This document shows, piece by piece, positions 8,691 through 20,110 of a stretch of DNA of 64,000 nucleotides. This stretch comes from Oopsacas minuta (taxonomy: Eukaryota; Animalia; Porifera). The stretch's first letter is position 1. Every line of letters starts with the position of its first letter. The notes beneath the pieces are model-generated. The model made no database searches. It was not told where the DNA came from and was given only the letters and a program-made list of their open reading frames with translations. Both the position numbers and the translations under genes were made by a program. The DNA lies in NCBI GenBank assembly GCA_024704765.1, contig JAKMXF010000312.1, positions 186,001 to 250,000 of the forward strand, given 5' to 3'.

Positions 8691-11033
8691 TTAAAAAACG
8701 ATCAGTAAAGCTAGCATCGACATCAGCAGAGAGAGGATGCTTACTTGAATAGTTTCAGCTTGATTAGGATTGAATTGGAGTTTCTCGTAAAACCCTGAAT
8801 TGAATATGTAATTAGTACACATAGTCAACTCGTCTGGGGCTGGATTATGTCTGTTAGAAGCTTCCTCAATCAGTATAGCCATACCCTGTATTTGATGTAT
8901 TTCTATGTGGCAATGTGCAAACCAATAACCTGGATTATCCGATTTGAAGTTGAGAACCACATATCCACCAGCTGGTATAATTACGGTATCTTTACGAGGT
9001 GTTTTGGAGGAAATGTTCAGAAGAGGACTTGGATCACTCCATGATGGATTTGTACATGTCATTGTCCGCTCTGTACACTGACCAGTGACATTAGGCAGTT
9101 GTAGAAGTTGATTACAATCAATGTCTGGATTTTGTTCATTAACATAACCGTTTCTATCATAATAAGATGGGTACCCTACCTTCAATACTTGGAAGGTGTG
9201 TCCATGAATATGCATTGGATGTGAGTTTAAGAATCTTCCTTCAGCACTGACAACTATTTGAACGGTTTTATCGTAATCTATCTCAACCTGATGCGTGCAG
9301 ATACATCCGTATTGATTAGAGGGATGTGCGCTACAATCTTGATTATCATCACAAACATCTGAATATTGTCCAAACTGTGTTTGCTGTACTTGAGGTGGGT
9401 AGGGGGGAAGAACGAACCTCCTGCCATTAATCGATCCACTAAATCCCTCTCCTTCAAAATTAAGATTCCAGAAGAACAGGTGATCGTTGTCAGTTGCGTA
9501 GGCTTCAGGCAGATCTTCAGCTGGGGTTTCTATCAGTAGTCGGAAATTATCAACATTTATGCAATCTATCCCATAAGAAGTATGAAAATTTTCGAATGGA
9601 CAGTTCACTGCTCTACACCTAGGTCCCATGGTACAATTTCTCATAGGAGAGTTCATACTGATACTCTCATAGGAAGTAGATGGCACTCCGTTATCCATTG
9701 GTGCTGTCTCGTAATGGAGAATAGCTTCAGTGTAATGGTTAAGAGAAGGGAACGGTGCATTAGCGAAACAGTCAGGTTCTGCTTCAAGTGTTTCAATGCG
9801 TATTATGTAATTGGAAATTACAGCAGTTGCGTTGAGAAGGAAATCGTATCTCTCTCCAGAATGAATGATTATGTAATTAACCTCTTCAATAGGTTCTATG
9901 AAGTAGCTGTCTGTAGCAATCGTGGTTAGATTGTGTCCGTCAATTGAGAATCTGAACGCGTACAATGACTGAGCCCCGATTAACCTGAACCTGTACACAT
10001 TCCCTCGTTCTACCCTGAACTCTGATAACCTACTAGATATATAAGGGACTGATTCTTCCCTTCCTAGCCCGTTAATCAGCGACGAGAAATATGGGGCTGG
10101 TCCTACTTCACCGCCATCATAGCTAAAGGTAGATGAGTAGGTCGTGTCGGTGCTCATTGGCACTTCATAAACTGGTATATCTGGATAGAATCTTAAGCCT
10201 GGATTGGCAATCTCAATATCATCAATGCTTGTAGACTCAAACCAATCACTAATAACAATTGTATGTCTGTCAGGATAATCTAGAAATGGACCTACACCCA
10301 AGCTCTCAAACGCTTCCGCTACCTCTGTCTTTGTCTTATTGTTCTCTCTGACTATAATACCACCAAACATTCCATCTGCTCTCTGAGTACCTGTATGTGA
10401 ATGGTACCAGAAGGTCCCAGGTACTGTTCCAACGAATGCATACGTGAAGGTTGTTGATGGTGCAATTGAACATTGTGTAATCTGTCCTACACCATCCATC
10501 CAGGGAGTATTGAATTGTTCAATTCCATGCCAATGAATGCTAGTTGCCTCATTTGTTAGTCCATTGACTATATGTGCGATTAGAGTGGCATCTTGATCCA
10601 TGATAATGGTAGGAGATGGTATTACACCATTCAGTGTGTATACTACTTTATAGTTCTTGCCATCTACCCAATTAGGCGTAATACAGAATGTGCTGTTGTC
10701 TATATAATTCTTGCAAGTGGAGTTTATTACCGGTATTGGTTCTCCGGTAACGTTATCCAGGTTGTATACGGTTCCTGCACTCCCTAAGATTTGGTTAGGT
10801 TTTACCCCAAGCACTTGATAGCTAGCGAATGTCTTGATTTGAGTAGCAGTCATTGTTAGCTCACATTCATCGTATCCAACCTCACACTCACACACTCTAT
10901 CTCCCCAACCACACTCTACCACACAGCGTTTCTTTCCATCGACTATTTCTGTGGATTGACAAGTAGCACTGACTGTAGTTATCCACGTTATGTAGAGCAA
11001 TACGAGGAGTAATACTTCTCTGAGTACTCCCAT
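8691..11033 (-). CDS. Laccase-type three-domain multicopper oxidase, 780 aa, signal peptide and C-terminal hydrophobic (GPI/TM) tail, single coding exon
   Basis: Cu motifs IHWHG, WYHSH, HPMHIHGH and HCHIEIHQIQGM (axial Met). Likely start MGVLREVLLLVLLY at 11033, just after an acceptor CAG; a GTGAGT donor lies near 11168. Confidence 0.95.
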   Translation of the reverse strand: MGVLREVLLLVLLYITWITTVSATCQSTEIVDGKKRCVVECGWGDRVCECEVGYDECELTMTATQIKTFASYQVLGVKPNQILGSAGTVYNLDNVTGEPIPVINSTCKNYIDNSTFCITPNWVDGKNYKVVYTLNGVIPSPTIIMDQDATLIAHIVNGLTNEATSIHWHGIEQFNTPWMDGVGQITQCSIAPSTTFTYAFVGTVPGTFWYHSHTGTQRADGMFGGIIVRENNKTKTEVAEAFESLGVGPFLDYPDRHTIVISDWFESTSIDDIEIANPGLRFYPDIPVYEVPMSTDTTYSSTFSYDGGEVGPAPYFSSLINGLGREESVPYISSRLSEFRVERGNVYRFRLIGAQSLYAFRFSIDGHNLTTIATDSYFIEPIEEVNYIIIHSGERYDFLLNATAVISNYIIRIETLEAEPDCFANAPFPSLNHYTEAILHYETAPMDNGVPSTSYESISMNSPMRNCTMGPRCRAVNCPFENFHTSYGIDCINVDNFRLLIETPAEDLPEAYATDNDHLFFWNLNFEGEGFSGSINGRRFVLPPYPPQVQQTQFGQYSDVCDDNQDCSAHPSNQYGCICTHQVEIDYDKTVQIVVSAEGRFLNSHPMHIHGHTFQVLKVGYPSYYDRNGYVNEQNPDIDCNQLLQLPNVTGQCTERTMTCTNPSWSDPSPLLNISSKTPRKDTVIIPAGGYVVLNFKSDNPGYWFAHCHIEIHQIQGMAILIEEASNRHNPAPDELTMCTNYIFNSGFYEKLQFNPNQAETIQVSILSLLMSMLALLIVF

Positions 11034-11884
11034 AGCTGTAGATACAAAATATATATCAAATATTAACTTCTCAATTAGCGTATACGTACATATTAACACT
11101 TTTAATTTTCTTGTGTTTTCTCGCGTGGAATATCTTATTAGCAATCAATAGTTATATAGAATACTCACCCGGAAACATGTATTAGCAACTTAAGCAATCT
11201 CAAAGCACATTTGTACGTATTTACGGAATTTGGGTGTCTAAATGAAGCCTAAAAATCTCGGAGAAATATTTTTCAAATCACTTACGCATACTGACTGGGT
11301 CCTTTGATGGGTGTTGATGATAGCATTCTTGATAAATATTTCAGTAAACAAGAGCTCTTCTAGCCATATAGGATTTGTTCTTTTTTGCCCAGAAATGCTG
11401 TTCCCCCCAGAAAATTAATCTGATACACTGAATTAGGGAACTACAGCTGTTTCTGACACCTATGGAGGAACTATTTACGCTAATTTCTCTAATTAGTTAT
11501 TCATTTTGAGACAGAAAATCTAATCAGATTGGAAAATAAAAAAATCTCAGAGGGGGAGGGGCTATGAAAGGTCAGGGGCCAAAATATCGTGACAACCTCT
11601 GGTGTGACTTTCTTCAAGTAGAATTTGGTTATTGAAATGTCTGTTCCGTTCAGCTTTTTTCTTTTGTGATTATGCCCTCAAAATTCTTGAATTTTGTTTT
11701 CAAGTGAATATTCTTCGTGTCATCGTTGTGGTTTTGTTATTGAGAGTAACAAGCTAGTGACGCTAGTGAGAAAATATTTGTAGGTATTCTATTTACATTT
11801 ATAGAAGGTATTAACCGCCAGAATCTTGTCTCTTGTTGAGTTACTCATTCTTAAGTTTTATATCAGGTGTTTTACTGCACAATT

Positions 11885-12580
11885 ATGGCGAACTATCAAC
11901 AATTTGTTGATAACATCGGGGAAGGAAGGATTGTCCCAGCTTACTACAAGCTACTCTCTGACATCAATTATTGTATCGGCGTATTTGAACGTTTGGAAAC
12001 TAATCGGACTTATTCTGAAATGTGGTATGATTGGTATGATGGGAAGAGAGGTCAAATCGATGTAGAAGGGTTCTCGGGAGCTATGAACACCTTAATGCAA
12101 GAGATATATTTAGGACTGACGCTGTACCTTGATTTGTCATATAAAGTGAAATATATGCAAACTTCTCAAGAATCTAAGCCTCAACCAGTGACACACTCTG
12201 AAGGAAGTACTCCACTCTGGGGGACTCAACAAGAATTGATGCACCAATTTGAACAGCTGGTAACTGCTATTAAACATATTGTAGTCCCGGACAAATCGCA
12301 ACCATGGTATCAGTTTTTCATGACTCTGGTGATGACAATAGTGAGGTACATAGTGACCCATGAATTGAGCTATCGTGCCAAAATGTACAAAATTATAAAG
12401 GAACTTTACCTGAATCTCAATCAGGGTGGTGTATTGGAGGTGTTAAGAGATAATCATAGGACCGTGAAAGAGCTGATACTAAATGTTGCTCCAGAGGCTG
12501 ATTTATCGGACGTGTTAAGAGAGCATAAGATCGTGACAGAGCTGATACTAAATGTTGCTCCAGGGGCTGATTTATCTTAG
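11885..12580 (+). CDS. Unknown family, member A1 (231 aa)
   Basis: Intronless ORF starting MANYQQF, preceded by an acceptor AG at 11865-66. The open frame is conserved in paralog A2, and the ETNRTYSE..DW motif is shared with the B genes. Confidence 0.8.
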   Translation: MANYQQFVDNIGEGRIVPAYYKLLSDINYCIGVFERLETNRTYSEMWYDWYDGKRGQIDVEGFSGAMNTLMQEIYLGLTLYLDLSYKVKYMQTSQESKPQPVTHSEGSTPLWGTQQELMHQFEQLVTAIKHIVVPDKSQPWYQFFMTLVMTIVRYIVTHELSYRAKMYKIIKELYLNLNQGGVLEVLRDNHRTVKELILNVAPEADLSDVLREHKIVTELILNVAPGADLS

Positions 12581-12834
12581 ATCTAGCTTAAGGTTAGAAA
12601 TCTATTGTATTCTTACTACTCCTAAATGTATATACAAACTTTCCTATTTTACCTAAAACTTCTCTCTTAATTTTCGATGTAATTTGCTTGGCTAGAGGGC
12701 AGGGGTATATTTGAAGGGGACTCTAGGGGCTCCCATGAGGACTAGTTGGTGTGTGCTCTATTTACCTATTTAAGACCTCACTAATGATAGCAATAGGATA
12801 CTTTACACTTGATTGTTTAAAACAAACTAGAGTT

Positions 12835-13911
12835 ATGGCCTCTACCCTAAGCTTTGATGGTCCCTTCGTTGCATCGGAATCCTTCCGTCAAATCTTGACT
12901 AATACAAATCATTGTCTTGACATGTTCGAGCATATAGAGACTAATAGAACTTGGTCAGAGTGGGCTTCAGATTGGGCAGTAGGTGAGAGGAATTCTATTA
13001 ATGGAGAAAGAATGGTTGGTTTCCTCAAAAAACTGATAAATAATGCTAGGAGTGGACAGAATGCATGTGCTGAGTGCTTAGAGGCATTAGATAAAGCTGA
13101 CAGTTTAAATACGAGAGCCAAACAAATGAATATATATCTTGAAGTTGAGGATTATGATATTTCTCAAGTAAAATTAGGTAAAACGTACGATCTAAACCGA
13201 AGCCCCAAATACAAAGAAACAAAGGCACTTGAGTATGCTGATTTGATCACCTATGGTGGTTTAACAGTACTGGCAACAGGAACTGTAACAGGAATCGAAT
13301 TCAAAAGGCGCGGTAAAAATTGGCAAGAAATAACAAAGTTATTTCGTAAGGTAAATATACTTACCTTCTCTAGAGATACTGTTATTATTTGCTCTTTCAC
13401 TGCATTAGGTGTACTTTTAGCTACCATAGCTTATAATAATGTTCATTCTAAAGGGCTTGAAAGGGGTGAAATATACCATAAAGTGAAGGAACTGTACGAG
13501 ACATTAGCGCTATTTGAAGTTGAAGGAACGCTTGCAAGTTTTGACAGTTTTGTAATGGAAATCGAAAGTGTCACCCGGCAAATACATTCAAGAAATGTTG
13601 ACTACGAGAAAATGGTTGATTTTCACATTACTGAAGCTTCGAATGCTAGGTTCCAGATTGAAACAAATCTACGAAACGAGGAGAAAACTCGCCAAAACAA
13701 GAAAGGTGTTACAGAAGCTATGAAACTATATCAACAAACTATCGAGAAGGAACTTAATGATTTATCTATTGAAGAACCAGATATGAGTGAGGAGATGAGA
13801 AAGAGAAGTGCTAAAAGAATAGCTAAGAACAGCTGTAAATCCTTTCTGAAAGGAAAATTGAATTACACTGATGATGAAGCAGATGAGTTTGTAGAAGTTT
13901 TCCAAAACTAA
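12835..13911 (+). CDS. Unknown family, member B1 (358 aa; helical, central hydrophobic segments, C-terminal coiled coil)
   Basis: Intronless ORF starting MASTLSF. N- and C-termini are conserved with B2. Hydrophobic stretches LITYGGLTVLATGTVTG and TVIICSFTALGVLLATIAY. Confidence 0.8.
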   Translation: MASTLSFDGPFVASESFRQILTNTNHCLDMFEHIETNRTWSEWASDWAVGERNSINGERMVGFLKKLINNARSGQNACAECLEALDKADSLNTRAKQMNIYLEVEDYDISQVKLGKTYDLNRSPKYKETKALEYADLITYGGLTVLATGTVTGIEFKRRGKNWQEITKLFRKVNILTFSRDTVIICSFTALGVLLATIAYNNVHSKGLERGEIYHKVKELYETLALFEVEGTLASFDSFVMEIESVTRQIHSRNVDYEKMVDFHITEASNARFQIETNLRNEEKTRQNKKGVTEAMKLYQQTIEKELNDLSIEEPDMSEEMRKRSAKRIAKNSCKSFLKGKLNYTDDEADEFVEVFQN

Positions 13912-14110
13912 CTTTTTTCTGTGGGCAGCTATCTCCTCTTATTTTATTTCTTTTAGGTGTTTTACTAAATATTTTTAGGAATTCTTTCTTTATGACGAAC
14001 ATAATCTTTTTGAATATTGTGGTAGCAGGGGCAGATGTTAGAAATGCTGGGGGGGATAATTATCCAGCTGGTGGGGCGCTGTAATCCCCCAGTAGGGTCC
14101 AGGGGCGAAC

Positions 14111-14172
14111 TTAAGTGGTAGTAATAGGGCCTGTCGGCACTTGGACGACAGGCCCTATTCACTACCACTTAA
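14111..14172. other. TTAA-bounded 62-bp hairpin (second copy at 17791-17853)
   Basis: ttaagtggtagtaatagggcctgtcg-loop-cgacaggccctattcactaccacttaa; ~26-bp stem, 9-nt loop. Confidence 0.85.
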
Positions 14173-14298
14173 TTTCCCCTTCTACTTACTGTTAAGAAAG
14201 TCAAAATATTTTCTCTTAACTTCCCCATCTTCATTTGACTTGGAATTAGAAGTACTTGACTCTAATAACCGAACCAAGTTGTTTAGCAGCCAGTTAGT

Positions 14299-14425
14299 AT
14301 GGTGTTATTAGCTGCAGCTATCTGCTCCAAACAGGGAAAGATTCTAGTGTCTCGACAGTTTGTAGAGATGAACAGATCTCGTATTGAGGGATTGCTTACT
14401 ACATTCACTAAGCTGTTAGAATCTG
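14299..14425 (+). pseudogene. Orphan duplicate of delta-COP exon 1
   Basis: 127 nt ([42 protein letters not shown]) nearly identical to 17910-18036, with the donor retained. No downstream delta-COP exons follow before the duplication junction. Confidence 0.9.
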
Positions 14426-15528
14426 GTTAGATACATATGATATCTTATACGAACTATAACTTTACGTATATCATATCCAACTGTCCTTTTTAGTCCTCCA
14501 GGGCTTGTCTTGATTATTTTCCTATAATTATTTGATGTAAAACAATTTATACGAGTAGTAATACTTCTCTGAGTGCTCTTTGATGATAGTATTCTTGATA
14601 AATATTTCAGTAAACAAGAGCTCTTCTAGCCATATAGGATTTGTTCTTTTTTTGCCCAGAAATGCTGTTCCCCCCAGAAAATTAATCTGATACGTTGAAT
14701 TAGGGAACTACAGCTGTTTCTGACACCTATGGAGGAATTATTTACGTTAATTTCTCTAATTAGTTATTCATTTTGAGACAGAAAATCTAATCAGATTGGA
14801 AAATAAAAAAATCTCAGAGGGGGAGGGGCTATGGAAGGTCAAGGGGCCAAAATATCGTGACAACCTCTGGTGTGACTTTCTTCAAGTAGAATTTGGCCGT
14901 TTCGTGAATTTGGTTATCAAAATGTCTGTTCCGTTCAGCTTTTATCTTTTGTGATTGTGACCTAGAAATTCTTGAAAAACAATATTTCTCACAAATAATA
15001 CTTTAATAAGTTCAGCTAAATTAGCAAAAGTATTTGAATATAAATAATCAGAAAAGGCTCTGTTCAGATAAATTGATCAAAACTAAAATTTTGTTGGAAT
15101 TTGTTATATTATTAAAACTTTCCAATTAAAACGAAATGATACAATTCTTAAGATATTAGTCTACAAAGTTCGTAAGTTTACTCACGAGTTAGAATACACT
15201 TGCATTAGACACCTATAATTATCTTGTAATATCCCTACAAGATAATTATAGGCATTGTATTTATATTTCAGATTCCTCATATAAAGCTCAGCTATAGTAT
15301 AGTAATACAGTCTTTGTAATACAAAAACCCCCGACCCTCATTCCGAAAATGACATTTCCTCGAACATAGAAAAGCTAATATTCAAAAAACTGTACTATAG
15401 TATAGGTTAGCTGTATATAAGGTATTCTATTTACTTTTATAGAAGGTATTAACCTCCAGAATCTTGTCTCTTGTTGACTAGTTACTCATTCTTAAGTTTT
15501 ATATCAGGTGTTTCACTGCTGCACAATT

Positions 15529-16164
15529 ATGGCGAACTATCAACAATTTGTTGATAACATCGGTGAAGGAAGGATTGTCCCAGCTTACTCCAAGCTACTC
15601 TCTGACATCAATTATTGTATCAAAGTATTTGAACGTTTGGAAACTAATCGGACTTATTCTGAAATGTGGTATGATTGGTATAATGGAGAGAGAGGTCAAA
15701 TCGATGTAGAAGGGTTCTTGGGAGCTATGAACACCTTAAGGGAAGAGATAAAATTAGGACTGAGGCTGTACCTTGATTTGACATATAAAGTGAAAAATAT
15801 GCGAACTTCTCAAGAATCTAATCCTCAACCAATGACACACTCTGAAGGAAGTACTCCACGCTGGGAGACTCAACAAGAATTGATGCACCAATTTGCACAG
15901 CTGGTAACTGCTGTTGAACATATTGTAGTCCCGGACGAAACACAACCATCCTATCAGTTTTTCATGACTCTGGTGATGACAATGGTGACAAGGATGAGTT
16001 ACAAGGCGACTCCTGAATTGAGCTATCGTGCGAAAATGTACAAAATTATAAAGGAACTTTACCTGAATCTCAATCAGGATGGTGTATTGGAGGTGTTAAG
16101 AGATAATCATAAGACCGTGAAAGAGTTGATACTAACTATTGATCCAGAGGCTGATTTATCTTAG
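15529..16164 (+). CDS. Unknown family, member A2 (211 aa)
   Basis: Paralog of A1 with an intact frame, a 9-nt in-frame indel and no C-terminal duplication. Confidence 0.8.
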   Translation: MANYQQFVDNIGEGRIVPAYSKLLSDINYCIKVFERLETNRTYSEMWYDWYNGERGQIDVEGFLGAMNTLREEIKLGLRLYLDLTYKVKNMRTSQESNPQPMTHSEGSTPRWETQQELMHQFAQLVTAVEHIVVPDETQPSYQFFMTLVMTMVTRMSYKATPELSYRAKMYKIIKELYLNLNQDGVLEVLRDNHKTVKELILTIDPEADLS

Positions 16165-16423
16165 AACTAGCTTAAGGTTAGAAAAGTATTGTATTCTTAC
16201 TACTACTAAATGTATATACGGGCTTTCCTATTTTACCTAAATCTTTCCTCTTAATTTTCTATCTGATTTGCTTGGCTAGAGGGCAGGGGTTTATTTGAAG
16301 GGCTCCCAGGCCTCCATGAGCCATGAGGACTAGTTGGTGTGTGCTCTATGTAAGATATTTAAGACCTCACTAATGATTTAAATGAGATATTTTACACTTG
16401 ATTATTTATAACAAGCTAGAGTT

Positions 16424-17578
16424 ATGGCCTCTAGCCTAAACTTTGATGATCCTTACGTTGCATCGGAATCCTTCTATCAAATCTGGACTGATGCAAATCA
16501 TTGTCTTGGCATGTTCGAGCGTCTTGAGAAGAATAGAACTTGGTCAGAGTGGGCTTCAGATTGGACAGTAGGTGAGAGGAATTCTATTAATAGAAAAAGA
16601 ATGGTTTTTTTCCTCAAAAAACTGATAGAGAATGTTAAGAGCGGACAGAATACATGTGAGGGGGTAAAACAAGAATTAACTAAGCAGAAAGGTTTACAAA
16701 TGAGGGCCGAACAGTTGAAAATAAGGGCCGAACAGATGGAAAGATGTTAGAAAATTTTGAAATTTGTAAATACAAATCAGGTGAACCGTACAATAGAAGG
16801 GAAGGAACTCCTGGAAAGAAACTCGAATGTGGTAGAATGATAAACTTTGGAGGAATGGTAGGAGCAGGTGGAACAGCATTGGCTACAACATTAGCAACTG
16901 GAGTTACTGCTGTCGATTTAGCAGCAGTCTCTAAGGGGATTATCGTTTTGCCAGCGATGACAATGAGTACTGTTGTCGTTACCTGTAATCGCTATTAGTG
17001 AACTAACTCTCATAGGTGGACTTTTAAGTGCCGTCGCTTATAAACATGTTCATTCAAAAGGGACTAATAGGGGCATAATATACCAGAAGGTTAAGCAACT
17101 ATACGATATGTTATTGGATATGGAAGATAAAAGAGTCTTTGCTGATTTTCAGGGTCTTACAACAGCAATGGAAAGTCACACAAAGATGCTACAAGAATAT
17201 ATCAAAGATTGCGAAAAAACGCTTGATGATCAGCAAAAAATACTTGATGAACAGCAACAAATGCTTATGCTTGAATTTCAACTCAAACAACAATCTCAGG
17301 CCCCGCAGGCTAGGTTGCAGTATGAAACAGATATACAAAGCAATGAGAAGAAAGACTTCATCAAAAAGCGGGAAGAAGGTGTTGCAGAAGCTCTGATACT
17401 ATACCAACAAACTTTCAAGAAGGAACTTAATGATTTATCTATTGAAGAACCAGATATGAGTGAGGAGATGAGGAAGAGAAGTGCTAAAAGAATAGCTAAG
17501 AACAGCTGTAAATCCTTTCTGAAAGGAAAATTGGATTACACTGATGATGAAGCAGATGAGTTTTTAGATTTTTCATAA
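16424..17578 (+). CDS. Unknown family, member B2 (~384 aa), interrupted by two compensating frameshifts (assembly error or pseudogene)
   Basis: ORF pieces 16424-16750, 16744-16998 and 16973-17578 align colinearly with B1. Shifts at ~16747 (TT where TTT restores frame) and ~16979. Confidence 0.7.
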
Positions 17579-17909
17579 TTTTCCCAAACTATCTTTTTTC
17601 TGTGGGCAGCTATCTTTCGTTGCATTTTGTTTATTTTAGGTGTTTACTGAATATTTTTAGGATTTCTTTCTTTTTGATGAACATTATCCCTTTTTGAATA
17701 TTGTGGTAACAGGGGCGGATGTTAGAAATGCTGGGGGATAATTATCCAGCTGGTGAGGCGCTGTAACCCCCAGTAGGGTCCAGGGGCGACTTAAGTGGTA
17801 GTAAATAGGCCCTGTTGGCACTTAGACGACAGGCCCTATTCACTACCACTTAATATCCCCTTCTACTTACTGTTAAGAAGTCGAAATAGTTACTTAGCAG
17901 CTAGTTAGT

Positions 17910-20110
17910 ATGGTGTTATTAGCTGCAGCTATTTGCTCCAAACAGGGAAAGATTCTAGTGTCTCGACAGTTTGTGGAGATGAACAGATCTCGTATTGAGG
18001 GATTGCTTACTACATTCACTAAGCTGTTAGAATCTGGTTAGATACATATGATATCTTATACGAACTATAACTTTACGTATATCATATCCAACTTTCCTTT
18101 TTAGTCCTCCAGGCTTGTCTTGATAATTTTCCTATAATTATTTGATGTAAACAATTCATATAAAGTGAAACCTCACACAGGGGTCTGTAGAAATGGAGTG
18201 AAAAATAAATAGCGAATTCCTATTCCCATTTGTGTAGGTTACGCATTACCTATTTGTTATTCTAGGAGACAGTAAACAACAACACACTTTCATAGAAACA
18301 GAATCAGTTCGCTACGTCTACCAGCCAATGGATTCCAGTCTCTACACAGTATTACTAACCACTAAAGCTAGTAATATCCTTGAGGACTTGGAGAGCTTAA
18401 GACTATTCTCTCGTGTAGTTACAGAGTACTGTACTACTGTATGTGAAGCTGATATTAAGGACAATGCATTTCAACTCATCTTTGCATTCGATGAGATTGT
18501 AGCATTGGGATATAGAGAGAACGTTAATATGACTCAAATAAGGTTTATATAATATTTCTAAGCTCAGAAACTCGTATACTATATGTAATTTTACAGGACT
18601 TATATTGACATGGATTCTTACGATGAGAAGGTGTCTATTGCACAACGAAAGGCTCAAGAGAGAGAGGCAGCTGACATAATGAAGAGGAAGGCTAAGGAAC
18701 TAGAGCTAGCTCGTAAGGAGCAGGCTAAGAAGGGAGGAATGGGTAGAGGAGATAGGATATCATTTCCAGGTATTATCTCCATCCAGATATGTATATACAG
18801 TGTATGCCGGTTATAAAAACACCCTTGGGGGTAGTAATACAGGTTCTTATACTAAAATATACAGGAATATATGAACACAGTTTTCCAGAGGATGGTACTT
18901 ATAACCAGCATCCACTGTAATTACTATATTAGATGCTGTATAACATCTTGTAGGAGGTATAGCTGGTACAGGTGTTAGTTCCAGTGAGGTGAATACGCTC
19001 TCAGTCCTAGACAACAAACCTCCCTTCTACTCATCTCAAGGGAAAGCAGCCGGTAGCAGGGGAATGAAACTGACACCTAAATCAAGAAATGTGGAGAATT
19101 TTGTGGATAACATAATGTTTGTTATTAAATAAAAATTAGAGTTGACAGATTTACTTCTATTTATACTCTAGGCGAGAAGGTGGACACGTAGCATCTCTCA
19201 CAACAAAAGACGCCAGAACAGGAGCTTCTCATCTCAGTCAATCAGCTGTTAGTCTTAAGCCTACTTCTCCTGTACATATTCTAGTGCAGGAGAAGATTAA
19301 TCTGTTTGCTGATAGAAATGGGGGTCTGGAGCAATTCGAGGTATTTACACTCTTGTTAATGTGCGGATTCTACAGCTCCTGTAATTTTTAATTCACACTA
19401 GATTAATGGAGTTCTTTATCTTATCGTTTCGGATGCAGACGGATTAGAGAATACACAAGTACAAATTGAAAGTAAAGAGAAACGTAACTTTCAAATGCAA
19501 ACTCATCCTAACATCGATAAGAAGTTATTTCTACAGAATTCTATTATAGCTATTAAACCTGATGGAAAGTCTTATCTATTAGGAGAGAAGGTGTTACTCA
19601 AATATGGACCATTTTACCTTTCATGTTTTATATACTTCATTGGTTTAGACAGGTGTATTGAAATGGCGTTTCGCCAGCACAGATGAATCAAACATTCCTC
19701 TCTCCATAAACTGTTGGCCCTCAGACGGGGGAGATAGGTGTGATGTGAATATAGAGTATGAGCTGACTCAGCCTAATCTTACGCTTAATGACGTTATAAT
19801 TAGCATTCCATTACCCACGGGATCTGGTAACCCAGTTGTAACAGAATCTGATGGAGATTATGCACTAGACTCTAAGAAGAGATTATTAGACTGGCATTTA
19901 CCTGTGATAGATTCTAACAACACAACTGGTTCAATGGAATTCAGTATACCTGGGCTACCAGATGATTTCTTTCCTATTTCTATTCAGTTTCATTCTGATA
20001 AACCCTTCATGCAGTTTTCAATTCATGACGTCATTTCTAGGAATACTGGTGAAAAAGTTAAATTTTCTATGGAAGCAGAATTATTAGTCGACAGATATGT
20101 CATTCAGTGA
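17910..20110 (+). CDS. ARCN1: Coatomer subunit delta (delta-COP), multi-exon
   Basis: [21 protein letters not shown]; [34 protein letters not shown]; [18 protein letters not shown]; MDSYDEK; mu-homology C-terminus ([23 protein letters not shown]). Confidence 0.96.

Follow-up and report, generated by a model that had tools for sequence, protein, structure and literature searches.

Mosaic tandem copies of a gene pair in the glass sponge Oopsacas minuta, with positive selection possible but unproven

The glass sponge Oopsacas minuta carries a duplicated unit of two genes, here called A and B, on contig JAKMXF010000312.1 (assembly GCA_024704765.1). We analysed 64,000 nucleotides of the forward strand of this contig (positions 186,001 to 250,000; hereafter the window, in whose own coordinates all window positions are given), and the unit is repeated head-to-tail between 11314 and 18151, as seen from the direct-repeat families D1-D16 and a global alignment of both units. 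In each unit gene A precedes gene B, both on the plus strand (Table 1). A preliminary description of the window, made from the sequence alone, took the copies A1/A2 and B1/B2 to be recent paralogs driven apart by diversifying selection. According to our results, the units are mosaics of young and old segments, replacement changes in A and in the N-terminal domain of B have accumulated roughly as fast as silent ones or somewhat faster, and the second copy of B is broken. We lean towards relaxed purifying selection, acting in a birth-and-death array that is prone to conversion and is losing one of its units; positive selection is a possibility, but unproven here.

Divergence between the units varies strongly along their length. 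The Jukes-Cantor (JC) distance is 0.063 in the left flank (its first ~300 nt are ~1.5% diverged), 0.030 in the 5' proximal region of A, 0.072 in the A coding sequence (CDS), 0.157 in the A-B spacer, 0.137 in B codons 1-80, 0.63 in B codons 81-300, 0.041 in the last 58 codons of B, and 0.05-0.07 in the 3' flank. The statement that the flanking non-coding DNA remained highly similar therefore holds for the outer flanks but not for the A-B spacer, whose distance (K) exceeds the divergence at replacement sites (dN) of A (0.08) and equals that of the B N-terminus (0.15). The term "recent paralogs" is likewise only partly apt: A, the B N-terminus, and the B tail look young, with a divergence at silent sites (dS) of 0.04-0.09, whereas the B centre, at 0.6-0.9, is old and has a dN of 0.53-0.74. 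Because of this contrast in dS along the unit, we regard the units as mosaics rather than as uniformly recent paralogs. The head-to-tail order, a K that ranges from 0.03 to 0.63, and a dS that ranges from 0.04 to 0.9 are what a tandem duplication with gene conversion would leave behind, the conversion being our interpretation of the pattern. The B2 centre is closer to outgroup B genes than the B1 centre is, and a search of the O. minuta genome for a donor of the B2 centre returned nothing better than B1 itself. Copies that pass for recent paralogs can thus turn out to be conversion mosaics.

The B1 protein shares its N-terminal domain with A; its centre is divergent, its C-terminal tail is conserved, and it also has a coiled coil. 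Of two hydrophobic helices in the centre it keeps one, the first having been lost. B2 is full length but is spread over three reading frames, with two frameshifts and five original-frame stops between them. In a hand alignment the first break corresponds to a net 7-nt length difference from B1, and the second does not fall on a homopolymer. Since the assembly was polished with Illumina reads, we take both breaks as probably real. Rescue by splicing was considered and rejected: among GT-AG introns looked for by eye, none of plausible length restores the frame. A disrupted frame, as expected of a pseudogene, is thus seen in B2 only, and A1, A2, and B1 are intact. Both A frames are indeed open, as had been reported, at 231 aa and 211 aa; A1 is predicted to be all-helical and, by eye, has neither a signal peptide nor a hydrophobic segment. 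The two A proteins are separated by two indels, not one as first described: the first spans 3 codons, and the other is a terminal repeat of 23 codons that only A1 has.

The codon counts behind the claim of diversifying selection were largely reproduced. For A1 and A2, where ~28 replacement and ~4 silent codons had been reported, our recount gave 32 amino-acid-changing and 6 silent-only codons over 208 aligned codons; to the four silent-only changes already listed (GGG/GGT, GGG/GGA, GCC/GCG, and CTG/TTG) we add ACC/ACT and TCG/TCT. For the first 75 codons of B, the recount was 19 and 2, compared with ~20 and ~2. The neutral expectation of ~3:1 against which these counts had been set was too low, because the ratio of replacement to silent sites is 494:130 (3.8:1) in A and 180:45 (4.0:1) in the B N-terminus. 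Codon counting also lumps multiple hits; when changes were counted along mutational paths, the replacement-to-silent ratios were 35.7:8.3 in A and 22.5:3.5 in the B N-terminus (one-sided Fisher p = 0.42 and 0.35). A ratio of 7:1 or 10:1 in codon counts over a few dozen changes thus does not establish selection.

Pairwise estimates of dN/dS (omega), for which our own estimators agree with those of Biopython, lead to the same result. For A, omega was 1.13 (NG86), 0.94 (LWL85), 1.39 (YN00), and 1.25-1.27 (maximum likelihood), with p = 0.57 in a likelihood ratio test (LRT) against 1. Omitting the indel-adjacent codons (aligned codons 151-163) left omega at 1.16-1.29, again not significant, so that these codons do not drive the result. 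For B codons 1-75/80, dN/dS was 1.7-2.6 (p = 0.08-0.16 against 1), and for A pooled with B codons 1-80 it was 1.3-1.7 (p = 0.14). The preliminary description had proposed precisely this check and held that a dN/dS not significantly above 1 would refute its claim; such is the outcome for A, for the B N-terminus, and for the two pooled. Power was ~0.2-0.4 for a true omega of 1.5-2 (~0.43 at omega 2 with the ~44 substitutions in A); because it is this low, non-significance is not evidence of neutrality.

Comparison with relatives places these values in context. Among eight A-type sequences, the one-ratio omega was 0.41; the M1a model assigned 60% of sites to an omega of 0.16 and 40% to 1, and no class of sites with omega >1 was detected in this set (M2a equal to M1a, LRT 0). 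The A branch model gave a background of 0.35 and a foreground of 1.76 for A1/A2, different from the background (p = 8e-5) but not from 1 (p = 0.18), with lineage omegas of 1.86 for A1 and 1.58 for A2. The corresponding model for the B N-terminus (98 codons) gave a background of 0.36 and a foreground of 1.82 (p = 7e-4 against the background, p = 0.17 against 1), with lineage omegas of 1.17 for B1 and 2.65 for B2. The foreground omega is therefore ~5 times the family background in both copies of each gene. Decay of A2 alone was considered and rejected: derived residues are more numerous in A1 (11, compared with 5 in A2; at 11 further sites neither copy matches the outgroups), and the branch of A1 is the longer one, so that the signal is not simply decay of the unit with the broken B2. 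Of the sites that differ between A1 and A2, 39% are invariant in seven outgroup sequences, as against 57% of the sites that do not differ.

In relatives of these genes, omega differs by gene type and by region. Recent A-type pairs from two assemblies in the European Nucleotide Archive (ENA), described below, had omega values of 0.37-0.81, and pairs of the d-type (long A-like genes) had values of 0.46-0.79; intact pairs of the B-type and of a third type, C, had whole-gene values of 0.8-1.8 at dS of 0.03-0.32. Within B-type relatives, omega was 0.3 in the N-terminal domain and 1.5-1.6 in the centre (Fisher p 0.017-0.027; LRT p 0.06-0.07), and in an independent young B pair it reached 3.0 in the centre (p = 0.04). 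Because Oopsacas holds only two copies of each gene, B site models were run in the relatives only, within clades, with IQ-TREE branch proportions fixed and a single silent rate. M2a was favoured over M1a in the B-type (M0 omega 1.15, p = 0.016), in C clade 1 (0.92, p = 1e-4), in C clade 2 (1.40, p = 1e-4), and in c0, a further C-like group (1.24, p = 5e-4), but not in the d-type (0.65, p = 0.30). Recombination, which is evident from the mosaic dS, inflates such site tests. The probability that the B/C-type open reading frames (ORFs) of the relatives would have stayed open under unconstrained substitution is 0.0001-0.003; these are therefore functional genes that evolve at an omega of about 1 or above. 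Diversifying selection in the family, mainly in its B/C-type members, is plausible on these comparisons.

The course of events that we favour would be as follows. A two-gene module, comprising a small helical A protein and a helical B protein whose centre forms a hydrophobic hairpin and whose tail is conserved, was probably duplicated in tandem at an older date. Gene conversion or unequal crossing-over would then have homogenised everything except the B centre, which would account for the mosaic. After homogenisation, replacement changes would have built up in A and the B N-terminal domain about as fast as silent ones, or somewhat faster (omega 1.1-1.8), and the B gene of unit 2 would have picked up its two frameshifts as well. 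Relaxation rather than adaptation, and any function for the pair, are suggested rather than established by these data, and positive selection may contribute.

Several observations weigh against relaxation as the full account, and most of them speak for diversifying selection, in which A1/A2 and the B1/B2 N-termini would be copies of a recognition or conflict gene pair pushed apart from each other. Lineage omegas exceed 1 in all four lineages (A1, A2, B1, and B2) and lie far above the family background, and with a pooled omega of 1.3-1.8 and a power of ~0.4 at omega = 2 (~44 substitutions) a real excess is possible. Intact B/C-type relatives show a whole-gene omega of 0.9-1.4 and a central omega of 1.6-3.0, with M2a ahead of M1a (p 0.016 to 1e-4), and their retention of ORFs is not attainable under neutrality. 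The A1/A2 differences avoid positions that are hydrophobic across the family (5/71, compared with 26/135 elsewhere; p = 0.023) and gather on one face of the predicted helix 60-96 (p = 0.04), which hints at retained structural constraint. These hints are undermined by the silent changes, which are equally depleted at the hydrophobic positions of A, omega being the same in both classes of position; in the B N-terminus, hydrophobic core positions changed as often as others, with no sparing. The open frames of A1, A2, and B1 and the in-frame state of both A indels point weakly in the same direction, weakly because A would remain free of stops under free substitution with a probability of 0.12-0.15. 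On the other hand, in neither A1/A2 nor the B N-terminus did any test against omega = 1 reach significance (p 0.08-0.6), site models of the A-type have no class above 1, B2 carries frameshifts, and divergence of the neighbouring non-coding spacer equals or exceeds dN. The signal in the relatives, moreover, resides in the B/C centre and not in A or in the N-terminal domain, where omega is 0.3, and it comes from site tests that are prone to recombination in a family where recombination is active. What had been claimed for A1/A2 and the B N-terminus is thus unproven, while at the level of the family it finds partial support in B/C-type relatives. As an explanation of the differences between the Oopsacas copies, we consider diversifying selection a possibility that is somewhat unlikely.

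Two further explanations fare less well. The duplication could be an artefact, with the two units being divergent haplotypes of one locus placed in tandem, or the differences and frameshifts could be errors of assembly or polishing. The copy number and the junction at 14541-14580 are known from the assembled sequence alone, and the genome is a SPAdes hybrid assembly from pooled tissue (PMC10280926). The same assembly was Illumina-polished, however, and low heterozygosity is expected in the O. minuta population (PMC10280926). The locus lies inside a 410-kb scaffold, with a clean head-to-tail junction and a repeat insertion specific to one unit; the frameshifts occur where the units are ~57% identical, so that cross-mapping during polishing is unlikely; and relatives in two other assemblies also form tandem arrays. 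Errors would move omega towards 1 and could not create the mosaic dS. We therefore regard an artefact as quite improbable. A locally raised mutation rate, for instance through AID/APOBEC-like deaminases, might inflate the divergence of the genes in place of selection, and it would suit the regional heterogeneity of divergence, which includes the non-coding spacer. Transitions are not enriched, however (21 transitions to 22 transversions in A, 14 to 22 in the spacer), and hypermutation would not lift dN over dS; this explanation is hard to credit. Relaxed purifying selection in a conversion-prone array remains the reading that we prefer.

The A and B genes are members of an undescribed, fast-evolving family that forms same-strand tandem arrays. 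A profile search over 1.84 billion representative proteins yielded 78 representatives. Ten were traced, all to O. minuta or to ENA assemblies, and the six that were placed on contigs all lie in ERZ25071281 or ERZ25069837, which are probably other sponges, and probably glass sponges, judging by their sequences: A orthologues there are 51-63% identical to those of Oopsacas, and a dynein exon matches that of Oopsacas at 69% identity. Pfam had no match for the single proteins or for 12 family members, the PDB had none in sequence searches with a single protein and with a profile, and ESM Atlas gave no usable family match. In the ERZ assemblies the arrays combine A-type, B-type, and C-type genes on the same strand, with a dynein heavy-chain gene directly downstream. 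Four contigs of ERZ25069837 (L029-L032) represent one locus with differing content of family genes, which suggests that array copy number varies between haplotypes or individuals. The dynein-flanked locus recurs on several contigs (L029, L030, L031, and L032, and L026 and L027 of ERZ25071281), with family genes that vary in number and type. Shared synteny with these arrays was considered and dismissed, as the Oopsacas counterpart of the dynein neighbour is on another contig.

At two ERZ loci (L027 and L028) A is directly followed by B, from which we conclude that the A-B pair is a conserved module. One distant family member of O. minuta is KAI6654015.1 (P0082). Distant paralogs in the O. minuta genome are few and lie on C325, C7, C111, and C338. 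On C325 (336163-339738), a 332-aa gene joins an A-like body to a B/C-type C-terminal tail; C7 (89578-93185) holds a near-identical copy of it, split into two frames. On C111 (1076364-1082923), an A-like gene adjoins a B-like gene on the opposite strand, and on C338 (169846-179419), pieces of an A-like and of a B-like gene share one strand, ~6 kb from each other. A and B are thus found together at paralogous Oopsacas loci as well. The majority of A-type relatives (compare L026:2195-2998 and L028:3986-4804) have a hydrophobic tail at the C-terminus, which both Oopsacas A copies lack. The extension that carries this tail is 60-80 aa long, and A1 and A2 end just before it, at a conserved "...ADLS" motif. 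In length, the 254-nt A-B spacer of Oopsacas roughly equals the 87-nt spacer of the relatives and the missing tail taken together, so that a premature stop may have removed the tail in Oopsacas. Elsewhere on L028 (2662-3795 and 10552-11085), ORFs of ~53-aa tandem repeats stand next to Mutator-type transposase genes.

AlphaFold models of the proteins are all-helical and too weak (pLDDT, the predicted local distance difference test, 61 for B1 and 55 for A1) for placing the variable sites in three dimensions, so that these sites were assessed by the helical-wheel and hydrophobic-position tests given above. Foldseek against the PDB returned generic helical matches, including XaxA and ClyA at E 0.3-0.5 with TM <0.25, and a wide VIA-align search had a best Z of 8.0, the chance level for helical models; MLKL (Z 6.7) and F-BAR domains (Z ~7) are likewise at chance level. 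By eye, no member of the family has a signal peptide; a hydrophobic hairpin occupies the centre of the B- and C-types, and a tail anchor is seen in A relatives. We infer from these features that the proteins of the family are cytosolic, associate with membranes, and have an N-terminal domain in common.

A and B lie side by side, are distantly related and all-helical, and B has a hydrophobic hairpin at its centre; in these respects they recall the two-component pore-forming toxins of the ClyA superfamily (XaxAB/YaxAB, Hbl/Nhe). No significant sequence or structure match to ClyA, XaxA, or Hbl was found, a weak negative given the low confidence of the models. There is no Pfam or PDB sequence match, XaxA and ClyA are not among the best 50 rows of the VIA-align search, and an ESM Atlas lead to Bacillus_HBL (0.77) is at chance level; moreover, the sponge proteins lack a signal peptide, and the A-type relatives are tail-anchored. 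The likeness is a resemblance, not membership. The MHC and the sea-urchin Sp185/333 genes are birth-and-death tandem families with gene conversion and pseudogenes. Their mode of evolution is matched by the same-strand arrays, the content that varies between contigs of one locus (L029-L032), the mosaic divergence, a broken member beside intact ones, and the high dN/dS. There is, however, no relation in sequence or fold, and the sponge proteins, which have no signal peptide, do not look secreted or like surface receptors but cytosolic or membrane-inserted. Young duplicates under relaxed constraint are the third comparison: an omega ~5 times the background on post-duplication branches and one frameshifted gene are typical of them. 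Unlike in that case, both A copies are accelerated, A1, which stands beside an intact B, has the longer branch, and the sponge units are mosaics whose B centres are ~10 times older at silent sites.

Table 1. Features of the duplicated region and its left neighbour, in window coordinates
Feature	Position	Strand	Basis and remarks
Tandem unit 1 (A1 + B1 + flanks)	~11314..14541	+	Direct repeats D1-D16, global alignment
A1 CDS, 231 aa, open	11885..12580	+	ORF and protein alignment
Extra copy of last 23 codons, A1 only (in-frame internal duplication)	12509..12577	+	A1/A2 protein alignment
A1-B1 non-coding spacer, 254 nt	12581..12834	+	Unit-2 counterpart 16165-16423; JC distance 0.157
B1 CDS, 358 aa	12835..13911	+	ORF, family alignment
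B centre (B1 codons 81-300)	13075..13734	+	43% mismatched to B2
B tail (last 58 codons)	13735..13908	+	96% identical between units; conserved across whole family
Tandem unit 2 (A2 + broken B2)	~14580..18151	+	Same alignment; 38 nt gap from end of unit 1
Insertion private to unit 2	14985..15420	+	Unit alignment; carries dispersed repeat
A2 CDS, 211 aa, open	15529..16164	+	ORF and protein alignment
B2 piece 1, N-terminal domain	16424..16750	+	Stop after frameshift near 16738-16747
B2 piece 2, other frame: glycine/alanine-rich hydrophobic segment	16744..16998	+	Homologous to outgroup B hairpin
B2 piece 3: second hydrophobic helix, coiled coil, conserved tail	16973..17578	+	Frame of piece 1 again; second shift near 16962-16976
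Multicopper oxidase gene, intronless, left of the duplication	8691-11036	minus	Pfam

The assembly of O. minuta comprises 61.46 Mb in 365 scaffolds. Within the window, the frame of the multicopper oxidase (8691-11144, minus strand) encodes 781-817 aa in three domains without introns and has, by eye, hydrophobic segments at both ends, a leader at the N-terminus and a tail at the C-terminus; to the right of the duplication, frames at 18328-20110 look, by eye, like a coatomer-type gene. Short dispersed repeats in the unit flanks were copied along with the unit. One of them, an element of ~115 nt in the left flank of both units (11403-11520 and 14670-14790), was duplicated together with the unit and has at least a dozen copies elsewhere in the genome at 74-85% identity. 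The repeat within the insertion private to unit 2 has at least 64 genome matches at ~72-76% identity. A near-perfect palindromic hairpin with GC-rich arms of ~14 nt follows B in both units (14123-14160 and 17804-17840); it might act like a terminator or mark where a small repeat ends.

So far the family has been found in O. minuta and in two ENA assemblies that are probably from sponges. To our knowledge, no allorecognition or immune effector family has been described from glass sponges. It is conceivable, if rather doubtful, that the A, B, and C genes make up a system of conflict or immunity that acts on membranes and was not known before: helical proteins of the cytosol with a common N-terminal domain that would insert into membranes by a hairpin (B and C) or a tail anchor (A), encoded in haplotype-variable arrays that gene conversion shuffles and in which diversifying selection acts on the B/C centre. 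The Oopsacas pair would then be a young and still diverging case, in which positive selection would extend to A and to the B N-terminus. A lineage-restricted tandem family with a dN/dS of about 1 or above, ORFs that are kept, and copy variation at the level of haplotypes is in any case a reasonable candidate for a role in immunity or allorecognition.

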